DNA of 64,000 bases from sequence record MN445183.1. The stretch is one strand, 5' to 3'. The notes under the pieces were generated by a model. The model saw only the letters and a list, made by a program, of their open reading frames with translations, did no database searches and had not been told where the DNA came from. Both the position numbers and the translations under genes were made by a program. Positions 17,046-63,886 of the stretch are shown here, in pieces (within the stretch, counting starts at the first letter, position 1; every line of letters starts with the position of its first letter).

Positions 17046-18158
17046 TTATTCGACACCGGTCATAGGTAGAGACACCCAGTTGCGTTGCCACATCGTGCTG
17101 TAACCCGGTATCTTTGCAGTAACCGTATCACCTCGGAACGCAAAGCACCCACGGTCGTAGCACACCTGAAGGGCGGCTGATTGGTTTCTCAGAAACACGG
17201 GATTTTGTAAACCGGTTGTATCCAATTTCATGAGTGTGGCGGTACTTGCCGTGGCGTCAGCATCATAGCGTGGATATGTGCCAGAAAAATACCAGCCATC
17301 CGCAAGTTTAACATAAACGCCATACGTCTTACCCACCACGTCTAACACGGTTTCAGGATGTGCATACCAGCTGGTCCTCGTGTTGGCAACACCGTTCCCA
17401 CCCATCACCCCGTCAGCCAGCTGACCAAATGCTTGTGCGCCCGCCGAAAATAACGTGGTGCCGCTCAAATAATGAGTGGCGTAGTAACTTGAGGTGAATT
17501 TGTCGACGTTAGTTGCAAACGCCCTGGCTACTGGCGTTGGCCCGCTACCAACTGACCCGGACACCCCATACGCATCGTTACCCGTAATCAAGAGACGTCG
17601 GTTAGTGTCAAGGAAGAGGTTGTGTTCTTGCGGTGAATCAGAAGCGACGGGGATCGCTCCGCCCATATTGGCCATGAGTATAAAGCTGTGAACTTCAGAA
17701 CCAGCCGAAGACCCTAGCCCCTGCCATGCGTTACGGCCGGCACCATATAACGTTCCATTGGAGCCGATAATAAAGGTGTTAACGCCAGCGCCGCCGTTGA
17801 TACTGACTATACCTAAGTTACCAGCTATAGCGGTGCAGTATGAAGAGACATTGGTCTTTACTGCAACGTTTAATGCTCCAAACATATACCCAAAGTAACC
17901 GATCGCCCACCATTGCTTGTTATTCTTTCTCCAAAGTAAAGACCCGTTACTGCAAAACCCAACGGTCTCTACATCCGTATCGATTAACTTCCATTTTGTT
18001 AACACGGCTGATGTGTTGTTCTCATCCGCTAATCGCCCAGCGTTACCAGTGACGTATAAATTACCTTTCATGGTGAGTATCGCGGGACACGCACCAAACG
18101 CATACCACTTTAAAGGCGCAGCACCCGCAGGAGCCCCGCCAAGCATCATTTCTAACAT
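17046..18158 (-). CDS. MLE-tag RCC1/BLIP-II-like beta-propeller protein
   Basis: MLEMMLGG; repeated G.LY..G.N..G.LG units. Confidence 0.75.
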   Translation of the reverse strand: MLEMMLGGAPAGAAPLKWYAFGACPAILTMKGNLYVTGNAGRLADENNTSAVLTKWKLIDTDVETVGFCSNGSLLWRKNNKQWWAIGYFGYMFGALNVAVKTNVSSYCTAIAGNLGIVSINGGAGVNTFIIGSNGTLYGAGRNAWQGLGSSAGSEVHSFILMANMGGAIPVASDSPQEHNLFLDTNRRLLITGNDAYGVSGSVGSGPTPVARAFATNVDKFTSSYYATHYLSGTTLFSAGAQAFGQLADGVMGGNGVANTRTSWYAHPETVLDVVGKTYGVYVKLADGWYFSGTYPRYDADATASTATLMKLDTTGLQNPVFLRNQSAALQVCYDRGCFAFRGDTVTAKIPGYSTMWQRNWVSLPMTGVE

Positions 18159-18200
18159 AGTAAGGATCCCATTGTAATTTTGGTTGCTATAAAATCGGCC

Positions 18201-18259
18201 GGCATAAAGCCCTCTGGCTCCCCATGTAGGGAAGACCAGAGGTTAAGACAACTTTATGC
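18201..18259. terminator. terminator, GGCATAA/TTATGC family
   Basis: cctctggctccc-catgta-gggaagaccagagg flanked by the inverted hexamers; overlaps polymerase stop. Confidence 0.8.
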
Positions 18260-19984
18260 AGCATCCAGGAAAGTAAACTCAAGATCGTTTTCAGCGGCGT
18301 ACGAACGTGCCAGTGTAACCAGGTCCGGTGCTTGGTAAACCATACGCGCAATCTCACCCGCATTGTTAAACCCACCGGCTGCCAAGTTAACCGCAACTTG
18401 ACGGTACTGCGTATCATCCAGCCCTTCTATTGCCGTCATCTCAATCCAGGTGGTTTGTTTACCCACGTTCATGATGACGGTGCCAGACGGATAGGCCCCT
18501 TCTACGTCGATATCGTTCGTACCAGTACGCACATACGACTTGAGGTTCGGTAGCTCTTTAAACATTGGCTTGCCGTTAATCGCCACAAGCTCTGTTGGCA
18601 GCATAACAATCCAACCACCAAGACCTTGCAGATAATCATCAAGGTCAGTACGCATCTTGTCAGACGTGGTACCCCAGATATAACCGTTATCCATAACGTC
18701 ATAATGCATGGCTTCGGCAATACGAGTTGGCTGGGAAGTGAAGTTACGGTATTCAGATACCCCACAGAACGCAGGTACCGCTGCCGCAAGATCGTTGGTC
18801 TTCTCGTCCATCATTTCAACGACGATGCAGTCGAATAAGTTATACACCACATATTCATAACGGTAGTTGGTTTGCATGAATTCGTGCAGGTCAAGACCGT
18901 AGTACCCTTCGGCTTCTTTAAACGCAAGCTTACCGATACCATCCAGCACTTTACTGGCAATGTAGTCAAGCTTGTAGTTCAGCTCTTTCCCTTTTGCTGT
19001 GCGCAGGTAATAATACGCACACATGGAGTCGGCCCAACGGAACGACGCTGGCGCGTTCACATACGGCCACTTCTCATAGTTCGCCAACGGACGTTTCTTC
19101 TCAGTAACCCCGTCGTTTTTAACCTGGTGTGTTTTACCCTGGTAATATTTCACATGACGGTATTCTTTCGGTACCGATGGATCACAATAGACATCCGCTG
19201 GGTTAATACCCGCCATTTCTAAACACTGAGTGATAACCTGATAATCAAAGTCCAAGCTGTTCCAGCCGGTTACCCAATCAGGTTTCCATTCATGTGCCCT
19301 AGCAAACAGTTTAACGAAACCATCCGCAGGGTGGTCTACCAGCTCGTATTCCATTTTCAGATTACGCGCCTGGATGACTTCACCAATGTGTTTGTGCGCA
19401 CATTCGTGCAGCTTACGGATAATGGTTTCATCGTCTTCACCCGGGAAGAAGCGACGGACCACGAACGTATAAGAACGGTCCTTAAAGGACAACGACGCCA
19501 TCAACGGCTCACCTTGGTGCTCTTTGCTGACCACGTCGGTTTCGATATCGATTACGCTGACTTTGTACGGTGTCATCCCGATCTCAGGAAACTTACGATC
19601 GTACATGCCTTTAACCACAGACGCCGGACTGATATCCGCGCCATAAACGTACGGGCTGCGACAGATCTGCTTTAACGGTAAGTCGGACGCCCCCTTACCT
19701 AATGAACGACTGATGTGGTTTGGCAAGTTCCAATACGGTGTAGTGAATTTCTGAAGCTTCTTAATCTCTTCGTAGTCTTTCTTATCCTGGTGATTACGAA
19801 ACGCTTCACGAGTTAAGTAATAATCATACGGCATGTCTTTGATTATACGCGTATTGGGTGTCTGTGTTCCATCTGGGTGATGGATCACTTCCTTGACAAA
19901 AACGATATCAGACTTACCGTTGTAGCTCGGACTGTATACCGCAAACTTACATTCAAACTTAAGCTGATTGGTATTATCGCTCAT
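18254..19984 (-). CDS. family-B DNA polymerase subunit with 3'-5' exonuclease (phiKZ gp82-like half of split polymerase)
   Basis: ExoI IDIET, ExoII GWNSLDFD, ExoIII YNLFDC, motif A DIDVEGAYPS; ends before motifs B/C. Confidence 0.9.
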   Translation of the reverse strand: MSDNTNQLKFECKFAVYSPSYNGKSDIVFVKEVIHHPDGTQTPNTRIIKDMPYDYYLTREAFRNHQDKKDYEEIKKLQKFTTPYWNLPNHISRSLGKGASDLPLKQICRSPYVYGADISPASVVKGMYDRKFPEIGMTPYKVSVIDIETDVVSKEHQGEPLMASLSFKDRSYTFVVRRFFPGEDDETIIRKLHECAHKHIGEVIQARNLKMEYELVDHPADGFVKLFARAHEWKPDWVTGWNSLDFDYQVITQCLEMAGINPADVYCDPSVPKEYRHVKYYQGKTHQVKNDGVTEKKRPLANYEKWPYVNAPASFRWADSMCAYYYLRTAKGKELNYKLDYIASKVLDGIGKLAFKEAEGYYGLDLHEFMQTNYRYEYVVYNLFDCIVVEMMDEKTNDLAAAVPAFCGVSEYRNFTSQPTRIAEAMHYDVMDNGYIWGTTSDKMRTDLDDYLQGLGGWIVMLPTELVAINGKPMFKELPNLKSYVRTGTNDIDVEGAYPSGTVIMNVGKQTTWIEMTAIEGLDDTQYRQVAVNLAAGGFNNAGEIARMVYQAPDLVTLARSYAAENDLEFTFLDAA

Positions 19985-20082
19985 GTGATTTCTAATCCTA
20001 TGTCAACAAGGGCGGATGTTAATCCCTTTTAAGAAGGCTATAACATCAAGTACCCATTTATCTTTTTACAAAGGAGATTACC

Positions 20083-21339
20083 ATGCTGCTTGGCAGTGGT
20101 TTAGAAGCCATCGCATTCCAACGTACCCGCCCTGTATTTACCTTGCTCACTGCCGAGGTTCAGTCGCTGATGGACAAAATGGTTTCGAATAATGAGACCA
20201 AACTGACCGATGCACTGTTGAAAGAATCGAAGATCCCAACCATTCTCTCTGCGGCAAGTGGGTTTGATAATATCACTATGGTGGCGGACCAATACGCACC
20301 TATTAATGCGTACACGAACATTATCACAATCTCTAAGATGCACGTGTTCCATGATAAGTGGCGTCGTCAATTTACGACCAACGCCGATGCTTATGCATTA
20401 TACCGTCAAACCAATAACGTACTGACGGGTCAGATTGATCTGGAGACCGGCCGGGTAAGCGGTGATTTTAGTAAGATTCCATTAACCATTGGCTTGGGTA
20501 ACCAATTCCTGAATCCTAAGTACGGGTTTACGGCTGCCGAGGTTGCGGCAATTCTGTTACACGAACTGGGTCATGACTTCACGTATTGTTACACGCTACA
20601 TTATACTTGTACCACTAACATGGTGTTGGCGTTGGCAGCGAAAGCGATTGTGGCAGAAAGTGACAATCGCCAGAAACACGCAATCATGACCGATCTTCAG
20701 AACACGTTGGGGATCCGTATTGATAACATGGATGAGCTCACCCGCTACGACAAGTACGAAGATTACTATATCACCATGCTGGGTTCATATCGTAAGAAGA
20801 CTTACGACGCCCTAGGTTCCCCATCTTACAATACTAACATGTCAGAACAAATGGCGGACATGTTTGCCGCACGTCATGGTGGGGGCGCAGCTATTGTAAC
20901 TGGCCTTAACCGCATGAACAAACTGTTTACCCCGCCGACCTGGTACCGTGCCATTGAACGCGCACAGGGCATCCTGGCGTTTGTGATGTTGTCACCAATT
21001 ACAGTGCCGTTGTTCTTGGTCGGCGTGTTTGTCAACGATTTTGTTTCAGGTACGTATGACCTTGACAAAGATCGTTTCATCCGTATTCGTAATGAAGCAA
21101 TCGCTTCCTTAAAAGACCAGTCTTTATCCTCGGATGAAAAGAAAACCATCATGTCAGAAATTGACACGATTAACGAAATCATCAAGAGCACTGATAACGA
21201 CTGGTCGTTTGCTGGTAAGGTAGCCATGTTGGTTCGCTCCAGTCAACGCACACAATCGCGCCAAAAGAATTTGCTGCAAGATCTTGAAGCACTCACCAAT
21301 AACCCTCTGTATGTTGCTGCTGCAAAATACTCTGTTTAA
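20083..21339 (+). CDS. putative virion protein with zinc-metallopeptidase motif
   Basis: HELGH plus downstream EQMAD; N-terminal GSGLE site; hydrophobic C-terminal helix. Confidence 0.75.
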   Translation: MLLGSGLEAIAFQRTRPVFTLLTAEVQSLMDKMVSNNETKLTDALLKESKIPTILSAASGFDNITMVADQYAPINAYTNIITISKMHVFHDKWRRQFTTNADAYALYRQTNNVLTGQIDLETGRVSGDFSKIPLTIGLGNQFLNPKYGFTAAEVAAILLHELGHDFTYCYTLHYTCTTNMVLALAAKAIVAESDNRQKHAIMTDLQNTLGIRIDNMDELTRYDKYEDYYITMLGSYRKKTYDALGSPSYNTNMSEQMADMFAARHGGGAAIVTGLNRMNKLFTPPTWYRAIERAQGILAFVMLSPITVPLFLVGVFVNDFVSGTYDLDKDRFIRIRNEAIASLKDQSLSSDEKKTIMSEIDTINEIIKSTDNDWSFAGKVAMLVRSSQRTQSRQKNLLQDLEALTNNPLYVAAAKYSV

Positions 21340-21350
21340 AGGAAACCACA

Positions 21351-21851
21351 ATGATCGTTTTGAATGCTACTGATGTAAAGAACAACGTAATCGCTGTCCG
21401 CAGCATGTCAGAGATCCCGTCTACCCTGCGTGAAGAACTGGTGGTGTTCGGCCTGGCCCGCCTGATTGCTTTCGGCACTGGTATCCCGGCTAACCCGGTT
21501 GAGAACCCAGTGGCTTTCTTTGCTGAAAACAGCAAGACTGCAAAAGGGATCATTGCCGAAGTTAACGAAGGTACCGTGGTTAACATTAGCAAAGTGCTGG
21601 AGATGGCTGCGGCTATCTATCGTGCTCGCTATGACATGGTTCACTCACCGGTCACCAAGTCTTCTCAACAGCTGGCTATGCAGGCGCTGATCGGGAACAG
21701 CACTTATAACTTCCCACAGGCGATCGCTGACGCACTGGCCGCGTCACAGGACAGTAATGACATGGGTCGTTCCATTGGTTTTGCCCTGAACATGTTCAGC
21801 CTGATCACCACGCCAACCATCGATGTGGCTGAAGAAAACAACGAAGAATAA
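21351..21851 (+). CDS. hypothetical (probable virion) protein
   Basis: AAGGA RBS, in structural operon. Confidence 0.8.
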   Translation: MIVLNATDVKNNVIAVRSMSEIPSTLREELVVFGLARLIAFGTGIPANPVENPVAFFAENSKTAKGIIAEVNEGTVVNISKVLEMAAAIYRARYDMVHSPVTKSSQQLAMQALIGNSTYNFPQAIADALAASQDSNDMGRSIGFALNMFSLITTPTIDVAEENNEE

Positions 21852-21860
21852 GGAGCGGTC

Positions 21861-23267
21861 ATGTCTCTCGAAATGATTACTAGCTTCATGCAACCTAACG
21901 GAGCGCTGCCAAAGTCAGCGTTCACCGTGGTGAAGAAGCCAAACGATGACGTTGAGATTATCACCGATTCAGAAGACAAGGCGGTGCAGGCATCTCTGGA
22001 AGTCATTGGTCGTTTGGTGAACCTGCACAACCGTGTTGCGCGTGACGGGTTGTCTCGTGCTAACGTGGCTGAACTACAAGAGATTGCCCCAGCTGCTATC
22101 CCTGGCGGTTACGGACTCGAAGCCTTTACTGAGATGCCGTCTAACGTCATGATGGCCGCGGGCCTGGAGGGTATCATTAGCCAAACGCTGGACGGCCTGA
22201 AGAAGCTGATCAAGTTCCTCATTGAGAAACTGAAAGCCGGCTTTAACATCCTGGTTGACTCCTACAAGGTACTGACTGGCATTTCTCCAACAGCGTACAA
22301 GTTGGCCAAGCGTCAGGTGATTACCGAGCAGCTCATCAAGAACTGGCACAAGGTAATGACCAACGATCTGGACACCGTGGTACTGGAAGCGTTGCAGGCA
22401 AACAGCTACGACACGGATGGCGCACAGGTTGTTCTGGACGGCTTCTTTAAAGATGCCAGTGCCATTGTGGACAACCTCGGTGGTTTCGAAATGGTCATCA
22501 GTCAGTTGCAACGCGCGGTTGAAGAACTGATGACAGAATCCTCCATGCAGCAAGCCGCGTACAACAGGATGTGGGAGCGTGTTAATCGCGGTAAAGTCAC
22601 TGATGACGAGTACCGTGAAATGGCACTTCGTCTGTCCGGCATGATGGAGCCTCCTGCATTCCAGAAAATCAGCGGGCTGCTGGATCAGCTGGCGAAGAAG
22701 GTCGTGGAATCTAAACTGTACAAAGCAGACACCAAAGACGGTAAGCCGATCGTTGATCGTCTGCGCAGTGATAAGTTCCGTGACGTGTTGGTGGGTCTAC
22801 AAGATGCTTGTCGTCAGTCCAAGCCTACCGCACTGAAGTCTGTTGAAGCTTACGCCATGGCTAAGCAGCAGAATATCGATGCCACTGTTGAACAGCTGAA
22901 GTTCTTTGATCCGGTAGACCAGAAATCGGCCCGTGAATTCAAACAACAGCTGGATGCTCTGAAGGTGTACGATCGTTTCGTGTCGATCGACCTCGGTGAC
23001 GACGAAGGCTTTGAGATCATGTCGACGAAGTTCTTGGAACAACAGAACGACGTGAAGTCTGTTATTGACGTGGTGCGTAACATCACTGCGAACTATGCCG
23101 AGACCGTGTTCAAGATCACTGCCTTCCGTGACCATACTCGTCTGGTTGTGGTGCCGAAGATGGTGGCCAACACTCCGGAAGAGAAGTTTGCTGAAATGGT
23201 TGAAGGGATGACCGATAACCTGCGCAACGATATCCGTGAATGGGCCATGAAGATGGTTAAAATCTAA
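21861..23267 (+). CDS. putative head protein with propeptide
   Basis: YGLE and AGLE sites followed by hydrophobic helix LKKLIKFLIEKL. Confidence 0.75.
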   Translation: MSLEMITSFMQPNGALPKSAFTVVKKPNDDVEIITDSEDKAVQASLEVIGRLVNLHNRVARDGLSRANVAELQEIAPAAIPGGYGLEAFTEMPSNVMMAAGLEGIISQTLDGLKKLIKFLIEKLKAGFNILVDSYKVLTGISPTAYKLAKRQVITEQLIKNWHKVMTNDLDTVVLEALQANSYDTDGAQVVLDGFFKDASAIVDNLGGFEMVISQLQRAVEELMTESSMQQAAYNRMWERVNRGKVTDDEYREMALRLSGMMEPPAFQKISGLLDQLAKKVVESKLYKADTKDGKPIVDRLRSDKFRDVLVGLQDACRQSKPTALKSVEAYAMAKQQNIDATVEQLKFFDPVDQKSAREFKQQLDALKVYDRFVSIDLGDDEGFEIMSTKFLEQQNDVKSVIDVVRNITANYAETVFKITAFRDHTRLVVVPKMVANTPEEKFAEMVEGMTDNLRNDIREWAMKMVKI

Positions 23268-23276
23268 GGAGCGTCC

Positions 23277-42149: not shown

Positions 42150-43331
42150 TTAATCAGTTACAGTTGTGATGGCTATTAGTGGGATAGACTGTTGGGTAGT
42201 ATCAATCTTAATATTAAACACCGGGCTAATTAACCCAGTTTTCTCAAACGACAAAGAAATACGAGGGTCGAGATCAGGCGTATTTGCAGTCAACAACACA
42301 GGTGCATTACTGACAGACAAGTATGGTTTGGCCTGAGCGGTAGAGTCAGCGGTTATATTACCGACCGCCTTAATCAATTGGTCAGTTGTTATTGAGACGA
42401 CCAGTGTCTGCGCCGCACCCACCGCTTGCCCAACTATAATTGGCTCAGCATTTTCTACTACGACGCCAGGCGGCTTAATCGATTTCCCAGTCGTAATTGC
42501 GACATTGGTAACATTTTTGACAGGCACGCCAACCGGCCCAAATGACGGAACAGGCGTATTGATCAGAACGCCTTCCGCCGCTGCCGTTACCGCATAAGGA
42601 CCTAACACAATGTTAGGATCACGCACAAGTTCAACCACTGGTGTCCACGCATAGTTAGCCGGTGCCGATGACCCCATCCCCTCACTGCCGATGACTTCCA
42701 TCGCGTAGCCGCCCATTGGTGCGTTTAGGGTACTGAGGTTACGTCGATAAGCAACGGTAGCGTTACTGCTGCGCTCCAACATCAACGAAAACGAACTTGC
42801 AACACCATTATTTGCCCACGGTCCATGTACCACTTTGTCGAACAAAGCAAGTTCGGCAGACAGGATACTCATATCTGCATATGGATCGGTGTCGGTGCCA
42901 TACGGCGTACGAACCACCAACGGCCAATATGTCATCTTTCCTTTAGTGAACTCGGGTTTCACCTGTAGGTTAAACTGCTCGACCTCCTTCATTCCACTGG
43001 GTAGTGGCGAACGACCATACCCTTTCTTACCGTAGATCAATCCACTGTTATAAAGATCTTTCCACGTCACCTTCCCCAGGACGTAACTGGAAGGTATATA
43101 GAAAACGGTGCTGTTGTTTAAAATAAACTTGTGCCACAACGACAGGGCGTACGTCAGCTTGGTAGCAGACGTTACCATGGCGCTGATCTCACCCATGCTA
43201 AACAATTCACCCGGCGTTACCGTTCCAAAATACCCCGCTTCTTTATTTCCTGCAATTAACTTCTTGTTACCAGGTCCGGACCAAGAGACCAGATTAGGAT
43301 CTCCGCCGCCAGACAACATCATCTCTAACAT
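42150..43331 (-). CDS. MLE-tag putative virion protein, gp131-like domain plus Val/Pro-rich tail
   Basis: MLEMMLSGG start at 43331 behind GAGG; GPG..GYFG..WTPVVE. Confidence 0.8.
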   Translation of the reverse strand: MLEMMLSGGGDPNLVSWSGPGNKKLIAGNKEAGYFGTVTPGELFSMGEISAMVTSATKLTYALSLWHKFILNNSTVFYIPSSYVLGKVTWKDLYNSGLIYGKKGYGRSPLPSGMKEVEQFNLQVKPEFTKGKMTYWPLVVRTPYGTDTDPYADMSILSAELALFDKVVHGPWANNGVASSFSLMLERSSNATVAYRRNLSTLNAPMGGYAMEVIGSEGMGSSAPANYAWTPVVELVRDPNIVLGPYAVTAAAEGVLINTPVPSFGPVGVPVKNVTNVAITTGKSIKPPGVVVENAEPIIVGQAVGAAQTLVVSITTDQLIKAVGNITADSTAQAKPYLSVSNAPVLLTANTPDLDPRISLSFEKTGLISPVFNIKIDTTQQSIPLIAITTVTD

Positions 43332-43382
43332 ACAGACCTCGGTATAAAAGGACGCCAGGATTACACCCAACGTCCTGGATTA

Positions 43383-53731: not shown

Positions 53732-53734
53732 ACT

Positions 53735-53807: not shown

Positions 53808-53827
53808 CGTCGTGATAATGATGACAA

Positions 53828-54991: not shown

Positions 54992-55625
54992 TTTCTTTTC
55001 AATCGAAGGGTTGGACGGTTGTGGGAAGTCAGAATTACAACGCGCCATTGAAGCCGCGCTAACCGAAATGGGTGTGCGGTTCTCAATTGTAGAGGAACCC
55101 GGTCAGGATGGTGATCGTGCAGAACTGCGTCGTATTATGACCGATCCCGCAACCACGTTAGCGCCCGGTGACAAAAACATGGTGCGCACGTTGCTGATGG
55201 CTGCCGACCGTGTCATGAACGCTGAACGCATCCGGACGGACCTGGCTAACGGCATTACGGTATTGGCGTCGCGTTCGTTCATGTCCAGCGTGGTGTACCA
55301 AGGGATCATTGGCGGGCAGTTAGACCTGGTGACGGAAATCCATCAGAAAGCTAACCTGCCTTTCCCTGACATTATCTTTGTCATCAAAGTGTCTGGTGAA
55401 ACCTCTGTTAAACGCACTATGGGTCGCGGCGCGTTAGACGACATTGAAAAGCAAGTCCGCTTACGTGCCGATGAATATGCGTCTGCTTACGACTACGCTG
55501 AGGCGTTTGTCCGCCACATCACCAAAGGTAAAACCCGCGTTATCTATCTTGACGGTGAAGCATCTCGTGAAGATGTCTTTGCCCACGCTATGGCCCACAT
55601 TAAGGAGCAGCTTGAATGGAGTTGA
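54981..55625 (+). CDS. tmk: thymidylate kinase
   Basis: EGLDGCGKS P-loop, EEPG, LMAADR, SSVVYQG, PDIIF. Confidence 0.92.
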   Translation: MKSSFFSIEGLDGCGKSELQRAIEAALTEMGVRFSIVEEPGQDGDRAELRRIMTDPATTLAPGDKNMVRTLLMAADRVMNAERIRTDLANGITVLASRSFMSSVVYQGIIGGQLDLVTEIHQKANLPFPDIIFVIKVSGETSVKRTMGRGALDDIEKQVRLRADEYASAYDYAEAFVRHITKGKTRVIYLDGEASREDVFAHAMAHIKEQLEWS

Positions 55626-55960
55626 ACATGTGCGGTATCGCCCCGAGCGAAACCATCATGACCGAGTTGTACGGCTGGGGTGAGTTCCCCTTCAACTGGG
55701 TCGGTGAACGCGTTGCTGAGTTTAACGCTCTGAAGACCGATGAAAACAGCCAACCGGTTATGACGTGTGTGCTGAATCCACACGACCGTAAAGAAGACAA
55801 CGATTGGCGCTATCTTTTCGTCTACCCGGATGACAAGGATAAGTTTGACAAACTAGGTGAAGCAGCAGTAAAGATGATCGCAGCAATTCGTGACATCGAT
55901 AGCAAACTGTTTCGCGTCTCAGTGACCCATGATGGGATCGCCTGCGTTGCATTTATGTGA
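55616..55960 (+). CDS. hypothetical protein
   Basis: AAGGAG RBS. Confidence 0.8.
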   Translation: MELNMCGIAPSETIMTELYGWGEFPFNWVGERVAEFNALKTDENSQPVMTCVLNPHDRKEDNDWRYLFVYPDDKDKFDKLGEAAVKMIAAIRDIDSKLFRVSVTHDGIACVAFM

Positions 55961-55992
55961 TCCAATAAACCTTAACCTGTGAGATTGTAAAA

Positions 55993-56403
55993 ATGAAATT
56001 AGGCTACTACTACGGATTAGTGAAAGACAACAACTCCGACTTATACCGCCTTCTGAAGATCCAACGCGTTAATGCGGGTGAATCTTCGGTGGCAGCCTAC
56101 ACCCGCTGGATAAAAGAATTAGAACGTGAAGACAACAATCGCTACACTACCATGGGCCTGTCCTTTGGTGTGCTGAAAGTTGAATACAATACCAAAACGC
56201 GTATCGGCGTGGTAAAGGTAGGGTTTGCTGAGCTGGGAATGATTACGCCAAAACCGTCAATCATGTCCACGGCATTCAAAGGTGTGGCTGGTCAGACGAT
56301 GTACTTGTCTGGTAAGCCTAACCCCATACACAGCAATACCATGCTGAACCAAATTCGCGATGCGATCCTCGAACACATTAACGACGCTGTCTGGTCGATG
56401 TAA
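55993..56403 (+). CDS. hypothetical protein
   Basis: 136-aa ORF. Confidence 0.75.
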   Translation: MKLGYYYGLVKDNNSDLYRLLKIQRVNAGESSVAAYTRWIKELEREDNNRYTTMGLSFGVLKVEYNTKTRIGVVKVGFAELGMITPKPSIMSTAFKGVAGQTMYLSGKPNPIHSNTMLNQIRDAILEHINDAVWSM

Positions 56404-56412
56404 GGAACCACT

Positions 56413-56868
56413 ATGTATCAACTACACACCGACCCGAAACACTTCAGCAAGTTAATGGAGTTGCTGAGCGATTCCGTCCGACACCCCACTGACGGCGACG
56501 TTTACTTTAATACGTTCTTAGCCAGACTGAATGCGACGAATGAGATCATCACGTTAGCGTCCAGCACCGGTCAGGTCTACGTGAAGAGTAAGCAGATGCT
56601 TTACGTGCATATGGCCGTTACCCAACCAGGCGCTGAAATGATTGCTCATCTGTATCACGCGGTGCAGCGGCGTATTCACGAAGAGTGGGAAGCGGGTAAA
56701 CAGCCGTTAGGTGTTACCATTAAGCCGACGGCGATACAAGTGCGTTTTAATTATTACCAGCACAGCGGTATCTGGCTACAGGCCATGTCGTTACAGTGTC
56801 ATGGTATCATCAACAACGCGAACCAAAGTTATATCGTCGATCTACTACATAAAGCGCATACCTTGTAA
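56413..56868 (+). CDS. hypothetical protein
   Basis: AAGGA RBS. Confidence 0.75.
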   Translation: MYQLHTDPKHFSKLMELLSDSVRHPTDGDVYFNTFLARLNATNEIITLASSTGQVYVKSKQMLYVHMAVTQPGAEMIAHLYHAVQRRIHEEWEAGKQPLGVTIKPTAIQVRFNYYQHSGIWLQAMSLQCHGIINNANQSYIVDLLHKAHTL

Positions 56869-56872
56869 TAAC

Positions 56873-56936
56873 GCAGCTACCGCTCCCGACATGGGAAGCG
56901 GTAGCTGCTATTATGCCGATGTTCTTTTTTTTTTTT
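56873..56936. terminator. terminator, TTATGCCG family
   Basis: gcagctaccgctccc-gacat-gggaagcggtagctgc, TTATGCCG, T12. Confidence 0.9.
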
Positions 56937-58128
56937 AGATTTCGATACCGGTTATGTCGAGTGGAATAAAAACGTTGTTACCCGAATCTTTGCTCAGTGG
57001 AGCAAGCGCGTTCGCATAACCGTAGTTATAGCCGGTACCGTACAACGTCCCGTCTTTAACCGCCACCGTGTTAAAAAAGCTAGGGTCACAGCTGTAGATA
57101 TCAGCTCCGGTGAAATCGCCACCCATACCTGCGGTGATATTTGCTGGTGTGCCTCTGGTAATGGCCGTGGTCGACCCCAATCCATACCCAGACTGTCCAC
57201 CAACAAACCACCATTGACCGGCATTCTCTACATAGACACGATGTTGTAGTACAAATACCCGTATCGTTGTTCCACCCGCACCGGTAACGATAGATGTTGG
57301 TAACCCGGTCCCAGTGCTGTAATTAACCGGATACTTACCACCACCTATCTGACCATAGATGTAGTTACCTATACCGCTGAGCATTCTGTTTTGAAGCTCA
57401 TAGTAGTAACAGTTGGCGCCAGCATAAATGTTGGTGTATGCGCCGTTTCCTAGTCCTACGGCAACACGGTTTGCGCTGTTATTGTTATTTGACCCCATCG
57501 CATAGTTCGTGCCGGCACCCAATGCATAGATATAATTGTCAGTGGTGACAAAATAAGCGGTGTTGTTGTTGATTCCGACGGCAATGGATTTAAACTTGAC
57601 CCCCTCAGGGAATCCGGTGCCCGCACCGGTCAAGAGTTTACCGAATGTTCGAATATCCCCAGTGCTCTCTCTTATCCCCAGCGCACCGTTAGTAGCGTAC
57701 CCAGCGTTATATACGTCGCCATTACTCATCAATATCATGCTGGTGTTTGAACCGGACACATGACTTACGATAGTGGCATCTGTCGGCAACGCTGCAAAAT
57801 TGGCAGATAGATTAGTCTTGATGCTACAGTTTAAAGTGTTGGCACCTAAACCACTAATGTTGCCAGCGCCCCACCACTCACCGTCGTCTCTACGATAAAT
57901 CACACCACCCAGAGCGTTGGAATTAACGTAGTCAACCACATGGTCGTCAATCAAGTACCACTTATCCGTAAAAGTTTCGGTTTTACCCACTCCCCGCAAA
58001 AACCCCACAGAACCTCGACAGTACAATCCACCGGTTTCTGTTAATGCCATAGCTGCATACGTGCTGATCATCGCTTTCTTTATTCGTATCTCGGATTTAG
58101 GTGTGCTCCCCAGCATCATCTCCAACAT
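56935..58128 (-). CDS. MLE-tag RCC1/BLIP-II-like beta-propeller protein
   Basis: MLEMMLG start at 58128 behind GGGAG; G.LY..G repeats; paralog of 17046. Confidence 0.75.
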   Translation of the reverse strand: MLEMMLGSTPKSEIRIKKAMISTYAAMALTETGGLYCRGSVGFLRGVGKTETFTDKWYLIDDHVVDYVNSNALGGVIYRRDDGEWWGAGNISGLGANTLNCSIKTNLSANFAALPTDATIVSHVSGSNTSMILMSNGDVYNAGYATNGALGIRESTGDIRTFGKLLTGAGTGFPEGVKFKSIAVGINNNTAYFVTTDNYIYALGAGTNYAMGSNNNNSANRVAVGLGNGAYTNIYAGANCYYYELQNRMLSGIGNYIYGQIGGGKYPVNYSTGTGLPTSIVTGAGGTTIRVFVLQHRVYVENAGQWWFVGGQSGYGLGSTTAITRGTPANITAGMGGDFTGADIYSCDPSFFNTVAVKDGTLYGTGYNYGYANALAPLSKDSGNNVFIPLDITGIEI

Positions 58129-58166
58129 AACTAACTCCCAGAATAACACTTAATGTTCTATAAGAT

Positions 58167-58217
58167 CGGCATAAGGCCCGCCTAACCCACCACCCGAAGG
58201 CAATGAGTCAGGCAGGC
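58167..58217 (-). terminator. minus-strand terminator with UUCG loop, TTATGCCG family
   Basis: 19-bp stem that pairs on the minus strand through several G-U pairs, then cTTATGCCG. Confidence 0.8.
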
Positions 58218-58343
58218 AAGCGTACTACATATCGCATCAAAAATTACTCAAGTTAAAAGGTTAAAAGAAAATAGTCGTATTTGACAGATACGCCGATTAG
58301 GGCTGGGTTGTTGTTTTCGTTTTAAGGCGTGGAGCCTGAATAG

Positions 58344-58381
58344 AAAAAAAGAGGGGGCGAGTGACATCGTGTCCGCCCCCT
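58344..58381 (-). terminator. helicase terminator
   Basis: agggggcg..cgccccct stem then T7 on minus strand. Confidence 0.75.
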
Positions 58382-58422
58382 TAAAAACTTACTAAGTGTA
58401 TCTTCTGGTCATACCATATACG

Positions 58423-59958
58423 TTAACCGAACCACGGGTTCGCGCCACCGTCAGCCACGGTTTCACCAGCAACATGTTTACGAGACATGTCTTTACCGTT
58501 AATGTCATCCAGAATACCGGCCTCAGTAAACTTGTAGACACAGAACTTATCACGCTCAGGTGTAATGGAGATGGTGCGGTGTTTACCACGCTGCACACAC
58601 ATGTACGTTTCTTCACCGACACGCACGAGGTGGATAATGATCTCCACGTCGACTTCTTGGTCAATCTTCGTACAGTTATCCCAGTACCCTTTGTTCGCCG
58701 TTTCACGCGGCAGGTCTTCTTCCATCCCGTTACGCACCAGCATCTTCGCAGCAGGCGACAGCTGGTGAGGTGTGATCAGACAGATGCCACGTGCAGATGT
58801 GAAGTTACGGACACGACGGAACAGGTCACGGTATTCTTGACCCGCCACACCCTTCTCACATCCAGACTTATTGAACATCCCCAGGTAGTCAATGGTTAAC
58901 AGATGAATTTCATAACCCATGTTCTCGAACTGCTTAATGCGTTCGAACAGGTTACGGTAACCAAACTGTGATGGGTCGACACGACAGAAGTTGACTTCAT
59001 AACCCATAACGGATAATGATTCCATCACTTCTTTGGCTGCGGTCTCTTCATCAATTGCCTGATGGTCGTGCACTAAACCATCAACGTTGGCCTTAATCTT
59101 CTTCCACCAAGAAACCATGTTATCCGTCATGTTGTTTTCAGACGAGATGTGCATGATCATTGGTTTCTTCTTCGGATCGCGCATGTACGGTTTATTGTAG
59201 ATCGCAATCTGTCGGGTCAAGTCCATCGTGAACCCAGATTTGTTGTTGTGTTGCAATGCACCAATCAACACAAATTCAGAACGACGGAACCCACCGACTT
59301 CACCCAGCATACGGTTGATACCCTGATACCCGGTACGCAAAACCCCAACCGTTGAAGATTCTTCTTTGGCTTGCTTAAAGATTTGGCTTACCGCATTCAG
59401 GTCACTCACCGATACTTCACTGACAACCGCTGGGTCAAACTGGTCAGTGGTGGTTAAGTTCAGCGTTTCAATCTCTTCCATCAACTTACTGACAGCGACG
59501 TCAACATCAACGTCCTCACCGCCATAGATGATAGGCATGGCTAATTTCTTGATAACCGCTTTGGCTTTACGACGGCTATCCCAGCCTTTCAGGTCACGGT
59601 AAATCTGCGTGACGATCTGGTTGGCACGATACGGGTCATCTTCACTGGAGTTGATACCCATCTCCAGGGCTTGGTAAGTCGACGCATCTTGACCGCAGTC
59701 ATTCAGCAGACGTTGTAACAGGTCAAGTTTGTCTAACGCTTCCAGCTTGTTACGACCGATCAACCAACGAATTGTTTTACGCAACGCCAGCTGTACAGAA
59801 CGTTGCTCATCGCTACCCATTGTCTCAACAGGTGCGGGAATATTCTCCATGAGTTCGTCAACAAACTCACTGTAATCGTCACCGGCTTCACCACCAACAA
59901 CGCTGTGTTGGTAAAATAACGTAATAATCTTTATGATAAGCAGACCAGTGTCCATCAC
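58423..59958 (-). CDS. DnaB-like replicative helicase (phiKZ gp118-like)
   Basis: TGYQGINRMLG, GALQHNNKSG, HISSEN, IDYLGM, TPHQLS, QRGKHR. Confidence 0.92.
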   Translation of the reverse strand: MMDTGLLIIKIITLFYQHSVVGGEAGDDYSEFVDELMENIPAPVETMGSDEQRSVQLALRKTIRWLIGRNKLEALDKLDLLQRLLNDCGQDASTYQALEMGINSSEDDPYRANQIVTQIYRDLKGWDSRRKAKAVIKKLAMPIIYGGEDVDVDVAVSKLMEEIETLNLTTTDQFDPAVVSEVSVSDLNAVSQIFKQAKEESSTVGVLRTGYQGINRMLGEVGGFRRSEFVLIGALQHNNKSGFTMDLTRQIAIYNKPYMRDPKKKPMIMHISSENNMTDNMVSWWKKIKANVDGLVHDHQAIDEETAAKEVMESLSVMGYEVNFCRVDPSQFGYRNLFERIKQFENMGYEIHLLTIDYLGMFNKSGCEKGVAGQEYRDLFRRVRNFTSARGICLITPHQLSPAAKMLVRNGMEEDLPRETANKGYWDNCTKIDQEVDVEIIIHLVRVGEETYMCVQRGKHRTISITPERDKFCVYKFTEAGILDDINGKDMSRKHVAGETVADGGANPWFG

Positions 59959-59979
59959 GTTCCTCGTTAAGGTGAAGTT

Positions 59980-60606
59980 ATGTTTAAAGAGAAAATCGTT
60001 ATCGCTCCAGCTCCTATCCTACGAGCGCTGCGTGATAACCAATTGCCGTTAAAAGTTTTACTCGAACCAGAAAAACTACTTAGTATATTATCCACCCGAG
60101 ACGTTATCTTTTACTACGCTTTGAACGTCATGTTATGTAGCGCCGATTTTCGTAAGTCTCCCGCGGCGTCAGCCAACAAGCTGACCTACGCCTTGGCGCA
60201 GCTGCCTTACTACTCTAACGGTGTAATGGATGTGTTTACACAAGAAGAGTGGGTAATGTTCGGAAGTACTAATCAAAGTGACATCCGAGCTGAACTTTCG
60301 GAGGTGACCACACGCACTGCTTATGAATATGCCACAGGTGAGCCCTATGATGTAGAAGCGCATCGTAACGGCGAAGCAACGGAGTATGACTTCAAGACAA
60401 CGGTCATTAATGGCGACACAGTCTGTGTAATGATCGTACCCCGTGAAGATCAGAATGTGACTGATAGTATGTTAAGTCAGCGCCTGCTGCGTAAAGTGTT
60501 GTACTCTATGAACACTATCTCAGCAAAAGCCGACGAGTACAAAAGTCTTTACGTCGGGCTCTGCACTTCCATCATAAACAACGCGGTCGCGCAACGCAGT
60601 GTTTAA
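59980..60606 (+). CDS. hypothetical protein upstream of capsid gene (phiKZ gp119-like by position)
   Basis: AAGGTG RBS; synteny. Confidence 0.75.
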   Translation: MFKEKIVIAPAPILRALRDNQLPLKVLLEPEKLLSILSTRDVIFYYALNVMLCSADFRKSPAASANKLTYALAQLPYYSNGVMDVFTQEEWVMFGSTNQSDIRAELSEVTTRTAYEYATGEPYDVEAHRNGEATEYDFKTTVINGDTVCVMIVPREDQNVTDSMLSQRLLRKVLYSMNTISAKADEYKSLYVGLCTSIINNAVAQRSV

Positions 60607-60743
60607 CTGAATAATAATAGTATGTCAATTAACTTCGTTATGACGTGCTGTTTACCCGAGTGTTAGCGCAACACATATCCGTATCGGAACACCTGATCCG
60701 GGTGTAATCGAAAACTTATATAAGTTATTGAAAGGAACACCAA

Positions 60744-62966
60744 ATGGCATTAAAAGTCCTTCACACGCAGAATAGCTCTTCGCTGTTCAGCCGTATCAAA
60801 TCTGCGGTAAACAACGGCCAGTTCGCTGTTGACGATACTATTGTCCCGGGTTACGGTCTGGAGTCTCTGGATGCTGGCGCGATGGAAAAGCAGTCCGGTG
60901 CAATCACTACTGCGCTGAACGCGCTGCAAAGTGAATGTGGCCAGAAGGACGCTGTGAGCGCTGGGCTGGAAGGCTTCAACGAACAGCAGCTGGCCGCTGG
61001 TGCAATCGCTGCAACCATCGTTGGCGACCTGTCTGGTTACGGTCGTGCACTGCAATCCCGTTCCGCTACTGCGATGTCCGGTGGTTATCAGACCGTTTCT
61101 GGTTCCCGCTATGGTTCTGCTAACCCGAAACAGGGTTACGGTACTGAAGCGTTTGAACATGCTCAGGACTTTGTTCCTCAGCAGGCTCAGACCATCGAGT
61201 ACAACATCAAAGCATCCAAGCAGGATCCGGTTGGTGAAGCGTTCTTCCCAACTACTACCCTGACTGCAAACGACATCGGTCTGGATGTGAAGATCCCGGT
61301 TGATATCGTTGAGCCGTTCATCAAACACAAAGCCACCGGCGAAGTGACCGATTGGCAGCGTAAGAAACTGATCAACACCCTGCGTGATCCGTCCATCCTG
61401 CGCAACGACGCGATCAAACTGATCCCGTACAAGCCGGTTGATAAGTCTAACGACCAGCACTTCGCTGCCGGTACTGACTTCACCGAAGTTCAGGGTGGCG
61501 AAGATCTGCCGACTGCTGCGCTGAAGCCGGGTGTGCGTATTGGCTTCCTGGGCCTGTGCTCTACTCCGTCTCTGGTACAGAACGGCGTGATGGATCACAC
61601 TGACCAGATCGACAACAACGTCCGTCTGCAATATGTGTGGATCAAAGTCAGCAACGCTGGCGGCACCACCGAACTGTTCCGTCTGCGTACGGACAACCTG
61701 GATCGTTCTGCATTCCAGAAAACCCAGGAAGGCGATAAATTCCAGACTTCTCTGGACCTGGACGTTCCGGCATACCAGCTGAACTCCGCAGTGAAAACTG
61801 TGGCTGGCGCAGCTTCTGTACTGCTGGCTCCGCTGACCACCGGTAAACAAACTGTTGGTATCGCGCTGAAAATCAACGGCACCCTGAACCACGAAAAAGG
61901 TGACCTGGTTGTTAACGCCCTGGAACAGCCGCGCGTATCTCGCGTCTACGACAACGATTCTCGTGAAGACATCACTAAGACCAGTGCTGTACAGACCGAA
62001 ATCGCTAAGCTGACCTTTGAGTTCGCTGGCTACTACATCAAAGCCAACCTGCGTAACAGCAACTTCCGTACTCGCGAACAGCGTATCGACCGTCAGACCA
62101 GCACCTACAAGTACCTGGTGCAGCTGGGCGCGCCGATCACTGCAATCGCACCGGCAACCAACGACTGGGGCCCGGTTGAAGCTGTAGCTGTTGAGCAGCT
62201 GTCTACCGCTACCTACGCGCGTAACTCCGCAATGGCTATCAGCCGTCTGCTGGACTACGTTGACTCCATGCGCGCTTCTGGCATCGCTAACAATGCCCTG
62301 TGGCAGCGTTACGACGAAAACAGCGTGGAAGGTGTTGGTAAAGCTGTTGTTGATCCGTGGTTCGGTGAAGGCGACTACAACATCAAAGACCTGGTGAACT
62401 CCACCGCGTCCCACATGCGTCGCGAAGACATCAGCGAACAACTGCTGATGATCATCCGTAACTACGCATACCGCATGAACGCAGAATCCGGCTACAACGT
62501 AGCAATCGGCCTGCTGTACAACGAGACCCAGCCGAACCTGCTGATCGGTACCGACAACATCATCGCTCAGTACCTGATGGAAGTTGGCGATCTGCGTACT
62601 GCTGGTATCTCCTTCAAAGTAACTGTTGTGACTTCTAACAACATCGAAATGAAGGGCAAGGTCATCATGACCCTGTCTCGTATGAAAGCGGGCGGTCTGG
62701 ATCTGTGCACCTTCGGTATGCACCTGTGGGTACCTGAAATCGTAGCAACCGTTAAGATCATGCGTAACGGTAACTACATCCAGGAAACCATGGTACAGCC
62801 ACGTAACCTGCACGTTGTTGTGTGTCCGATCATCGCTGCGCTGACCATCTCTGGTCTGGACGAAGCGTACACCGGTTCCATCAACATCCCGGTTGCAACT
62901 GGCGACCTGGCTGCTAACATCGCTACTGCGGTGCTGGACGGTCTGAACGCACAGCCGAAACCGTAA
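60744..62966 (+). CDS. major capsid protein precursor (phiKZ gp120-like)
   Basis: 740 aa, YGLE/AGLE/YGTE propeptide sites, IEYN...EAFFPT and QPRNLHV motifs, extreme codon bias, next to helicase. Confidence 0.92.
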   Translation: MALKVLHTQNSSSLFSRIKSAVNNGQFAVDDTIVPGYGLESLDAGAMEKQSGAITTALNALQSECGQKDAVSAGLEGFNEQQLAAGAIAATIVGDLSGYGRALQSRSATAMSGGYQTVSGSRYGSANPKQGYGTEAFEHAQDFVPQQAQTIEYNIKASKQDPVGEAFFPTTTLTANDIGLDVKIPVDIVEPFIKHKATGEVTDWQRKKLINTLRDPSILRNDAIKLIPYKPVDKSNDQHFAAGTDFTEVQGGEDLPTAALKPGVRIGFLGLCSTPSLVQNGVMDHTDQIDNNVRLQYVWIKVSNAGGTTELFRLRTDNLDRSAFQKTQEGDKFQTSLDLDVPAYQLNSAVKTVAGAASVLLAPLTTGKQTVGIALKINGTLNHEKGDLVVNALEQPRVSRVYDNDSREDITKTSAVQTEIAKLTFEFAGYYIKANLRNSNFRTREQRIDRQTSTYKYLVQLGAPITAIAPATNDWGPVEAVAVEQLSTATYARNSAMAISRLLDYVDSMRASGIANNALWQRYDENSVEGVGKAVVDPWFGEGDYNIKDLVNSTASHMRREDISEQLLMIIRNYAYRMNAESGYNVAIGLLYNETQPNLLIGTDNIIAQYLMEVGDLRTAGISFKVTVVTSNNIEMKGKVIMTLSRMKAGGLDLCTFGMHLWVPEIVATVKIMRNGNYIQETMVQPRNLHVVVCPIIAALTISGLDEAYTGSINIPVATGDLAANIATAVLDGLNAQPKP

Positions 62967-62979
62967 GTCTACGGTAAAC

Positions 62980-63030
62980 GCATAAACGACACACGCCTGC
63001 CCTTCGGGGTGGGTGTGTGTTTTTATGCCG
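62980..63030 (+). terminator. capsid terminator, GCATAA/TTATGCCG family
   Basis: acacacgcctgccc-ttcg-gggtgggtgtgtgt then TTTTATGCCG. Confidence 0.9.
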
Positions 63031-63067
63031 ATGTTATAGACAAAGCGGATTCTTAACTGGTGGATTT

Positions 63068-63886
63068 ATGTTAGAATTATTTCTCGGTAGGCGAACTAAA
63101 AATGTAACAACAGTAACAGGCGAGATAATTTTTGCTAACGGCATTAATGGAACAGCAACCACGCGCTCATGGATAGTGCCAAAGGGCGTATACAGTGTCA
63201 GTGCTGTTGTCGTGGGGCAAGGTGGCGGAGGGTATGACAGACCAGGTGCCGGTGGCGATTTAAGATGGATAAGTGAATTAGAAGTCACACCCGGCGAAAC
63301 CATTACAGTGACAGTTGGTCCTGGCGGAAGTAGCGTCGCCAGCGCGCTTTTACGTGGATCCAGTATACTGATCACGGCCAAAGCGGGATCGGCCGTTGCA
63401 CCTAGCAGTGATATAGACGGTGTTTTGATTGGTGGTGGTAACGGCGGGCTTAAAGGGTACGGTACTTCGGGTGCGGGCGATTCAATTGCCGGCGGCGGAG
63501 GCGCTGGTGGTTATTTAGGGAACGGCGGTAACGGCGCTGACGCATCAACAAGCTACGGCGGAAATGGTCAAGGCGGCGGAGGCGGAGGCGGTGGTCGTTT
63601 TTATGCGAACGCCACTTCTAAATATGCCGCTGCCGCTGGAGGCGGTGTAGGGTTATACGGGATTAAGAACGGTGTAATCTTAAATGGCGCCGGCGGGACT
63701 TATGAGATCGTGTCATCCGGTAGCGCTAACTCAAGATCGTTAGGTAAAGGCGGTTCCGGGGGTGGTAACGCGATTGGTGGTTCTGGTGGTACGTATGGCG
63801 GTGGGTCGAGCTACCAGGGTGGTGGTGGTGGCGCAGTGCGTATTATCTGGGGGCCTGGCCGTAGCTTCCCTAACAATGCAGCTTAA
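63068..63886 (+). CDS. MLE-tag glycine-rich domain protein
   Basis: MLELFLG start; W.VPKGV.SVSAVVVG.GGGG...VTPGETITVTVG.GG...GAVRIIW. Confidence 0.8.
   Translation: MLELFLGRRTKNVTTVTGEIIFANGINGTATTRSWIVPKGVYSVSAVVVGQGGGGYDRPGAGGDLRWISELEVTPGETITVTVGPGGSSVASALLRGSSILITAKAGSAVAPSSDIDGVLIGGGNGGLKGYGTSGAGDSIAGGGGAGGYLGNGGNGADASTSYGGNGQGGGGGGGGRFYANATSKYAAAAGGGVGLYGIKNGVILNGAGGTYEIVSSGSANSRSLGKGGSGGGNAIGGSGGTYGGGSSYQGGGGGAVRIIWGPGRSFPNNAA

Follow-up and report, generated by a model that had tools for sequence, protein, structure and literature searches.

Variable genes of T4-type phages lie between composite promoter/terminator repeats known as PeSL; where such a gene is missing, a single chimeric repeat is left, and recombination of one flanking repeat with the other gives rise to mini-circles (Arbiol 2010, PMC2839356; Comeau 2014, PMC4122927). 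In the jumbo phage phiKZ, intrinsic terminators mapped by ONT-cappable-seq consist of a stem-loop followed by TTAT, with the motif BCCYCCCCHWWDGGGRRGGBYTTATKYYGT (Putzeys et al. 2024, PMC10914365). The late promoter of phiKZ is TATG with transcription starting at the G (PMC7598289, PMC4666361, PMC12809450; also Ceyssens 2014). This T(-3)ATG(+1) is read in the non-template strand by the beta-like subunit of the non-virion RNA polymerase (PMC4666361, PMC7598289, PMC12809450), and all four bases are needed in vitro (Yakunina 2015, PMC4666361). Here, we compare these systems with a 5' boundary that is shared by three gene units in the last 64 kb of the 288,012-bp genome of Salmonella phage vB_SalM_SA002 (hereafter SA002; MN445183.1, positions 224013-288012), a 64,000-nucleotide stretch that we refer to as the window. 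At this boundary, a hairpin and the octamer TTATGCCG are followed by an element containing TTATAG and then by a gene whose product starts with the residues MLE (the MLE tag). We consider it probable that the boundary represents two generic phiKZ-like transcription signals placed back to back, and that the genes behind it are gained, lost and swapped by short-homology recombination.

With window 16000-20000 as the query, megablast gave 100% identity to MN445183.1. The annotation of SA002 is that of a phiKZ-like jumbo myovirus: it lists numerous split RNA polymerase beta/beta' genes together with genes for a DNA polymerase, a DnaB helicase and a major capsid protein of phiKZ type. Its nucleotide identity is ~83% to the Erwinia phages pEa_SNUABM_48 and 37 and ~74% to the Agricanvirus group (RAY, Ea35-70 and others); Proteus phage 10 is a further relative found in a phage collection. 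A literature search returned no paper on SA002 and none on Agricanvirus promoters, and an earlier MEME search in Agricanvirus gave nothing usable (PMC6690015). The three units occupy what we call slots, the positions directly behind the terminators of the DNA polymerase, DnaB helicase and major capsid genes. Slots were compared among SA002, pEa_SNUABM_48, RAY, Proteus phage 10 and the relatives L040 to L045, which stem from public runs (SRR24234331, ERR15285234, SRR22375708, ERZ15185859, SRR33371454, JGI 3300011643) and of which L040 and L041 cover the polymerase slot only and L042-L045 the helicase and capsid slots only.

A preliminary description of the window had placed TTATAG 29-30 nt before three MLE-tagged genes, and all of its coordinates held on re-checking (Table 1). 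Counted from the G of TTATAG to the A of the start codon, the spacing is 29, 30 and 29 nt at sites 1, 2 and 3. The hairpin described before each octamer is present as well, at -20 to -35 kcal/mol (z -4.6 to -6.7, none of 200 shuffles being as stable), and all six terminator sites of the window fold in the same range of -20 to -35 kcal/mol with z <= -4.6. The boundary is far above chance: CCGATNTTATAG has three exact matches in the window and five with at most one mismatch, against 0.57 expected (no shuffle reached 5), and 12 copies of TTATGCCG stand against 1.84 expected (no shuffle reached 12). The two minus-strand units also end alike, in TTATGCCG-TTC-T11 at 16296-16317 and in TTATGCCG-ATG-TTC-T12 at 56911-56936, and the gene at 63068 does lie between direct TTTTATGCCG repeats (63021-63030 and 63911-63920).

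Comparison with relatives separates resident parts of these sites from parts that belong to the units. The 3' ends of the two minus-strand units are, to judge from their layout, resident bidirectional terminators that also stand in cassette-free sites of relatives: the A-run/CGGCATAA/hairpin arrangement of the first is found in pEa_SNUABM_48, RAY, Proteus phage 10 and L040, and an equivalent of the second is present in the empty helicase sites of RAY and Proteus phage 10. The hairpin on the 5' side of the helicase-slot unit is absent from those empty sites. The hairpin behind the DNA polymerase gene is kept with compensatory changes in pEa_SNUABM_48, L040 and L041, and an element equivalent to the promoter-like sequence of the capsid slot follows the capsid terminator in RAY, L043, L044 and L045.

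Table 1. Positions of the boundary elements, units and related features in the window; functions named are predictions.
Feature	Position	Strand	Details
MLE-start gene	10344-11063	+	
Bidirectional terminator between convergent genes	16252..16317	.	Hairpin 16252-16292, TTATGCCG 16296-16303, T11 16307-16317; -35 kcal/mol, z -5.5
gp293, MLEMIMGG-tagged, phrog_1062/3589 'virion structural' family	16342..17025	-	phrog_1062 2e-29
gp294, MLEMMLGG-tagged RCC1-like beta-propeller	17046..18158	-	Pfam WD40_RLD 6.9e-8, phrog_4219 3e-19
Site 1 boundary	TTATGCCG 18207-18200; GAT 18196-18194; TTATAG 18192-18187; ATG 18158	-	GCC spacer between TTATGCCG and GAT
Promoter-like GATTTTATAG (ATNNTATR class)	18187..18196	-	Predicted start A 18188, leader ~30 nt
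Terminator tail TTATGCCG, 5' breakpoint of polymerase-slot unit	18200..18207	-	L040/L041 blastn homology ends at 18200
Terminator hairpin after DNA polymerase gene (18254-19984)	18212..18241	-	-25.7 kcal/mol, z -4.81
Promoter-like GATGTTATAG upstream of DNA polymerase gene, fifth GATNTTATAG copy	20038..20047	-	No terminator adjoining
MLE-start gene	42150-43331	-	
Bidirectional terminator	56865..56936	.	Hairpin 56865-56914, TTATGCCG 56911-56918, T12 56925-56936; -31.7 kcal/mol, z -6.7
gp328, MLEMMLGS-tagged RCC1-like	56935..58128	-	Paralog of gp294
Site 2 boundary	TTATGCCG 58174-58167; TTATAG 58163-58158; ATG 58128	-	TTATGCCG runs directly into ATCTTATAG
TTATGCCG (58174-58167) fused to promoter-like GATCTTATAG (58167-58158)	58158..58174	-	Predicted start A 58159
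Terminator hairpin, 5' side of helicase-slot unit	58176..58217	-	-34.1 kcal/mol, z -4.86
Capsid-gene terminator	62980..63030	+	Long hairpin with GCATAAA/TTTATGC pairing, TTATGCCG 63023-63030; -34.1 kcal/mol, z -6.66
Site 3 boundary	TTATGCCG 63023-63030; TTATAG 63034-63039; ATG 63068	+	TTATGCCG runs into ATGTTATAG
Promoter-like GATGTTATAG	63030..63039	+	Predicted start A 63038
gp332, MLELFLG-tagged glycine-rich-domain protein	63068..63886	+	phrog_4474 1e-48
Second terminator, hairpin and TTATGCCG 63913-63920	63888..63920	+	Direct repeat bracketing gp332; -20.3 kcal/mol, z -4.63

The octamer had been described as a cassette boundary. It does mark all three units, but it is not specific to them, as SA002 contains 48 copies genome-wide. 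By eye, nearly all of these lie directly 3' of a GC-rich hairpin, and at 39 of the 48 the upstream sequence folds at or below -16.4 kcal/mol in RNAfold, the 1% tail of random genome windows. A stricter hairpin detector flagged 24 of the 48 sites, and the RNAfold energies were used in its place. Tails with one mismatch add sites (TTATGCTG, 11/32 with such an upstream fold). Octamers occur after tandem genes and between convergent genes (for example at genome positions 5982, 16659, 27916/27957 and 107608 and at window positions 16296 and 56911), and a promoter would serve no purpose between convergent genes. Some hairpins have a copy at each end (CGGCATAA-hairpin-TTATGCCG), and many upstream genes end in GCATAA, which means that their stop codon pairs with the terminator tail. 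The tail YTTATGCCG of SA002 fits the phiKZ motif YTTATKYYG(T). By analogy, hairpin plus TTATGCCG would be the general terminator of SA002. As in phiKZ, a GC-rich hairpin precedes YTTATGCCG, there are dozens of copies per genome, and bidirectional versions lie between convergent genes. Unlike in phiKZ, the tail is strict (exact TTATGCCG at 48 sites), is often mirrored by GCATAA overlapping the upstream stop codon, and is often followed a few bases on by a T-run. A scan of 55000-64000 for canonical T-run terminators stayed at or below the shuffled expectation and picked up only the capsid-gene hairpin, in part.

At GCA-TAA gene ends in the window (5080-5087, 13128-13135, 16245-16250, the 18240s and 62981-62986), the outermost pairs of the stem are made between the TTATGC tail and the stop codon. 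Terminator structure is thereby tied to which stop codon is used and to which residue ends the protein.

TTATAG had been taken for a promoter belonging to the units themselves. It is part of a promoter-like motif that faces genes, but that motif is generic and not special to these units. GATNTTATAG occurs five times in the genome, always in intergenic sequence, and four copies lie 34-38 nt before MLE-tagged genes; the fifth precedes the DNA polymerase gene. Eighteen cassette boundaries from four phages yielded the consensus RAT-NN-TAT-R. Alignment of four phages showed no variation in the GATGTTATA that precedes the DNA polymerase gene, nor in TAAT-NN-TATGT, which stands ahead of a structural gene and of the capsid gene. 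The four genome matches of TAATNNTATG are all intergenic and lie upstream of the genes for capsid and tail sheath and of two structural genes; a motif of the ATNNTATR type is also found before the DNA polymerase gene and a helicase gene. AT..TAT[GA] has 80 matches in SA002, of which 44 are intergenic although intergenic DNA makes up 9% of the genome; 39 of these 44 face the next gene, mostly from 30-35 nt upstream of its ATG. With a pyrimidine at the last position ([GA]AT..TAT[CT]), only 4% of matches are intergenic. The pattern is repeated in pEa_SNUABM_48 (82 matches, 46 intergenic, 42 facing the next gene), where the control AT..TAT[CT] is intergenic in 17/144 cases. It took cross-phage alignment to reveal the motif; k-mer enrichment upstream of genes returned mainly Shine-Dalgarno sequences and an early-promoter motif.

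By this analogy, GATNTTATAG would be one instance of a general promoter-like motif, ATNNTATR, that extends the phiKZ late promoter. As the latter is T(-3)ATG(+1), TTATAG can be read as TAT-A(+1)-G, which gives the predicted starts in Table 1. The likeness covers the TAT-purine core ~30 nt before the start codon, its position before capsid, sheath and structural genes, the lack of a -35/-10 architecture and the presence of split beta/beta' polymerase subunits in the phage genome. The SA002 motif differs from the phiKZ promoter by a conserved AT two bases before the core, by A as well as G at the predicted +1, and by its occurrence before the DNA polymerase and helicase genes.

Inside coding DNA, [GA]AT..TAT[GA] is ~5x rarer than [GA]AT..TAT[CT] (20 versus 93 matches in SA002, whole genome), and the same depletion is seen in pEa_SNUABM_48; this suggests selection against stray promoter-like sites within genes. 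Some genes start 8-30 nt past a terminator tail with no other promoter-like element: gp313 (start 43331; tail at window 43340-43347, minus strand) and genes at genome positions 5443, 50917 and 55455. There, the tail's own TTATG/TTATA might serve as a TATR(+1) restart site. A further motif, CCTAYATTAC, recurs 25-60 nt after terminators behind AT-rich sequence (window 63951-63960, plus strand, and after the terminators at 1553 and 53765). It has 13 copies in pEa_SNUABM_48, 11 of them intergenic and 10 of those 11 facing the next gene, and by analogy it looks like the early (virion polymerase) promoter class of phiKZ-like phages.

The content of the slots varies widely between phages. Alignment of the syntenic loci revealed that relatives do not always carry the same genes: both empty sites and different cargo were found. 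In the polymerase slot, which holds one, two or three genes of different families, SA002 carries an RCC1-like gene and a phrog_1062 gene, L040 only a phrog_1062 gene (95% identical to gp293), L041 a phrog_1062 gene, pEa_SNUABM_48 a glycine-rich gene, RAY a glycine-rich gene with two small paralogs, and Proteus phage 10 two glycine-rich genes. The helicase slot holds an RCC1-like gene in SA002 and L045, phrog_1062 in L042 and pEa_SNUABM_48, phrog_1062 plus an RCC1-like gene in L044 and a Kelch gene in L043, and is empty in RAY and Proteus phage 10. In the capsid slot, a glycine-rich gene is present in SA002, L043, L044 and L045 and phrog_1062 in RAY; the slot is empty in L042, pEa_SNUABM_48 and Proteus phage 10, which thus lack gp332. 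Genes of the phrog_1062 family therefore occur in all three slots, and glycine-rich genes lie behind the capsid gene in some phages and behind the polymerase gene in others. Nearly every cargo gene starts with M-(L/F/N/I)-E and hydrophobic residues, and the first gene of a slot is preceded by the hairpin, TTATGCCG, 0-4 bases and the ATNNTATR element. Composite terminator/promoter repeats flank the variable genes in all three slots (SA002 and seven relatives), and the fused module at 58158..58174 recurs upstream of unrelated cargo in pEa_SNUABM_48, L042, L043 and L044. An exact-pattern scan of IMG/VR for TTATGCCG-N0-4-GATNTTATAG returned 18 loci, of which only that in RAY was genuine; the other 17, with neither hairpin nor tagged open reading frame, were chance matches.

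The breakpoints of homology fall on the same short elements. In the polymerase slot, blastn homology between SA002 and L040 or L041 ends exactly at the last base of TTATGCCG, as expected if the octamer is where units enter. For L040, homology picks up again at 16994, near codon 11 of gp293. L040 has no gp294: its gp293 homologue comes immediately after the polymerase gene, and the product matches gp293 except in the first ~12 residues. The gap means that SA002 gained a promoter, leader, gp294 and a new tag relative to L040. Homology with pEa_SNUABM_48 in this slot ends inside the promoter-like element (18187..18196). At the helicase slot, homology with L043 extends across the hairpin, the octamer, the promoter and the leader as far as 58115 (codon 5), where the RCC1-like body of SA002 stands in place of the Kelch body of L043. 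Capsid-slot homology stops at 63032 (L043), 63037 (L045) and 63079 (L044). Three of these breaks (58115, 63079 and 16994) lie in tag codons. Beyond gp332, homology with pEa_SNUABM_48 and L043 resumes at 63912. These two phages have the same capsid terminator hairpin, and the empty site of pEa_SNUABM_48 corresponds to the left flank of L043 up to TTTATGCCG joined to its right flank after the second TTTATGCCG, with one copy left. In RAY, the terminator hairpins on either side of gp318 resemble each other. Slot occupancy and breakpoints thus support in substance the proposal that moron-like units are inserted or swapped at the terminator octamer, and they point to short-homology recombination as the likely route.

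The main live rival, which we regard as unlikely but take seriously, accepts that the signals are real and attributes turnover solely to homologous recombination in long conserved flanks during co-infection, with octamer, promoter and tag merely conserved beside divergent sequence. The flanks are 80-85% identical over kilobases, ample for such exchange, and the ends of unaligned segments show no genome-wide enrichment at terminators. Exchange guided by flanks cannot move a gene from one slot to another, however, and the same cargo families occupy different slots. Moreover, the indel at the capsid slot has exact ends, with the octamer as a direct repeat on either side, and gp294 was inserted between the octamer and the gp293 tag relative to L040.

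The genome-wide comparison of SA002 with pEa_SNUABM_48 bears on both readings. It contains 106 unaligned segments (28% of the genome), and their ends do not lie nearer to terminators than gene ends in general do (17/212 versus 63/674). A terminator tail is touched by 11 of the 37 gaps that change in size and by 5 of the 69 that do not (odds ratio 5.4, p = 0.004). Together, this contrast and the lack of overall enrichment mean that the tail is associated with indels but is not the sole place of divergence. Besides that lack of enrichment, several points weigh against exchange at phiKZ-like signals. With 8-11 bp, the octamer is short for homologous recombination, and conserved signals beside fast-evolving genes would produce apparent breakpoints even if no recombination took place there. 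The proposed terminator and promoter functions draw on analogy with phiKZ and on sequence statistics. The three SA002 sites carry TATA, whereas phiKZ requires TATG in vitro. TATG is found at the orthologous sites of pEa_SNUABM_48, L040 and L042 and before the capsid and sheath genes, and across relatives the orthologous sites read TATGT, TATGA or TATAA.

A second alternative explains the shared upstream sequence by gene duplication alone, with paralogs having carried their upstream regions along. This is quite improbable. It is true that gp294 and gp328 are paralogs and that a loose ATTCTTA-C-GG-GG block is common to the leaders of three units. With the proteins at 34% identity (gp294 versus gp328, over 164 aa), DNA under no selection would have lost all resemblance, but the 17-nt module has stayed intact. 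It is also found upstream of unrelated genes, namely gp332, MGA_164, the DNA polymerase gene and, in relatives, Kelch and phrog_1062 cargo, and the motif is enriched in intergenic and depleted in coding DNA across the genome. Of the three tagged genes singled out in the window, all share the tag, but only gp294 and gp328 are related further; gp332 has nothing in common with them beyond the first residues.

The tag itself is a property of many genes. Fifteen SA002 genes start with MLE, six in the window and nine elsewhere in the genome, and 12 of them carry the fuller tag MLE-[MLIC]-[MLI]-[LM] with a glycine close behind. The bodies behind it belong to at least three unrelated families in SA002, namely RCC1-like propellers (gp294, gp328), phrog_1062/3589 proteins (gp293, gp284, gp313) and the glycine-rich gp332, and to four when the Kelch cargo of L043 is counted. 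gp332 is related to gene 00323 of pEa_SNUABM_48, which matches Pfam Gly_rich_2. Of the 15 MLE genes, 12 fall in regions without alignment to pEa_SNUABM_48, against 97 of 302 other genes (p = 3e-4). In an AlphaFold model of gp293 built on a 9-sequence alignment (mean predicted local distance difference test score, pLDDT, 67; predicted template modelling score, pTM, 0.74), tag residues 1-11 are disordered, and a Foldseek search of this model against the PDB gave no match below E = 1. The tagged proteins are probably hypervariable virion accessory proteins, such as fibre or receptor-binding proteins, as indicated by their family names, their variability among phages of different hosts and the annotation of RAY gp318 as 'virion structural protein'.

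A GPGP stretch often follows the MLE tag. The annotated start of RAY gp318 (FDH98_gp200; L009 8707-9420) at 8788 probably misses the true one by 81 nt on the downstream side: translation from an in-frame ATG at 8707 begins MLELLMIG, and this ATG follows an TTATGCCG-TGT-GATTTTATAG module at a distance of 25 nt.

The preliminary description had also likened the units to integron cassettes, and the octamer could on that view be the target of a site-specific recombinase. Discrete single-gene units do vary at fixed positions, with cassette-like presence and absence and a short repeat at the junctions. The likeness did not hold further, and we consider a dedicated recombinase very unlikely. The units have their own promoter-like element, attC-like and attI sites are absent, and the genome annotations, to which no hidden Markov model scan aimed at recombinases was added, list no integrase or recombinase but only exonuclease VIII-like and SbcC-like proteins. 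Breakpoints also fall in promoter and tag codons, unlike a fixed crossover site, and the 48 octamers mostly lie beside stable genes. As the octamer is a generic tail and TTATAG part of a generic motif, neither is a dedicated recombination site.

A host sigma-70 promoter with TTATAG as its -10 box, which would make the units classical morons read by host RNA polymerase, is just as improbable: TTATAG resembles TATAAT and the units are insulated by terminators, but a sigma-70 scan of 55000-64000 stayed at or below the shuffled expectation with no listed site at the GATNTTATAG element, the -35 position is occupied by the GC-rich terminator stem, relatives have TATGT or TATGA, in keeping with TATR(+1) but not with a -10 box, transcription in phiKZ-type phages does not depend on the host polymerase (PMC7598289, PMC4666361), and the cassette G+C of 0.48-0.54 matches that of the window (0.49). 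Morons of lambdoid phages (Juhala 2000) share with the units the form of an autonomous promoter-gene-terminator unit between genes that are adjacent in relatives. They differ in that SA002 is a virulent jumbo phage, that the predicted promoter is of the phage's own type, that G+C is not deviant and that the cargo is probably a virion component instead of a factor benefiting a lysogenic host.

Exchange of units at phiKZ-like signals would work as follows. The hairpin with YTTATGCCG would act as an intrinsic terminator for the phage's own multisubunit RNA polymerases, often in the symmetric form GCATAA-hairpin-TTATGC plus T-run and so in both directions. Transcription would restart at the last purine of ATNNTATR, giving a leader of ~30 nt with a Shine-Dalgarno sequence. 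Genes behind such junctions would form short, insulated transcription units for variable virion accessory proteins with the tag MLEMMLGG, and over evolution these units would enter, leave or replace one another in slots behind the terminators of core genes. Whenever a promoter-gene-terminator unit comes to lie behind another terminator, copies of the tail flank it as a direct repeat. Recombination over short homologies, whether in tails, promoters or tag codons, could then excise, insert and swap units without a dedicated recombinase.

The suggested resemblance to PeSL cassettes fits this arrangement well: composite repeats flank non-core genes, the junctions of indels and replacements lie in the repeats, and one copy remains at an empty site. 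SA002 departs from PeSL in that its signals would serve phage-encoded polymerases in place of host sigma-70, that its cargo forms one defined class, tagged virion proteins, and does not consist of ORFans, and that tag codons form a third crossover zone. A broader picture, which we offer only tentatively and think less likely than its alternatives taken together, is that the phiKZ-like clade maintains a pool of receptor-binding or virion domains on a docking tag, MLEMMLGG, that move among insulated slots by way of tail, promoter and tag handles, recombinase-free, and so drive host-range change; the TTATG of the tail might double as a TATG(+1) restart.

Other non-coding blocks are conserved around these core genes. 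Three blocks ahead of the capsid gene show little or no variation among four phages: the late-promoter-like TAATAGTATGT, a hairpin GTGTTAGCGCRACAC and ATC-AAAACTTATATAAGTT (window 60615-60625, 60660-60674 and 60707-60726, plus strand). The last lies ~20 nt before the capsid ATG, too long and too near the Shine-Dalgarno sequence for a promoter alone, and may be a site of translational or RNA-level control. The spacer between the helicase gene and gp328 (58129-58422, minus strand) comprises ~290 nt of non-coding DNA that starts with its own hairpin and T-run terminator and contains blocks kept in four phages (around AGGCT-C--GCCT-AAAA and AGCCCTAA-CGGCGT). An Rfam scan of the whole window, this spacer included, gave no match.

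These comparisons provide working terminator and promoter rules for a clade that includes SA002, the pEa_SNUABM_48 group and Agricanvirus, and such rules can correct gene starts, as for RAY gp318. Gene shuffling of the PeSL type may extend beyond T4-like phages that depend on the host polymerase to phages that use their own enzymes. The genes affected are the hypervariable tagged virion proteins that are most likely to set host range in these Salmonella, Erwinia and Proteus phages, and the tag together with its 5' module gives an easy means of spotting such genes when new jumbo-phage genomes are sequenced.

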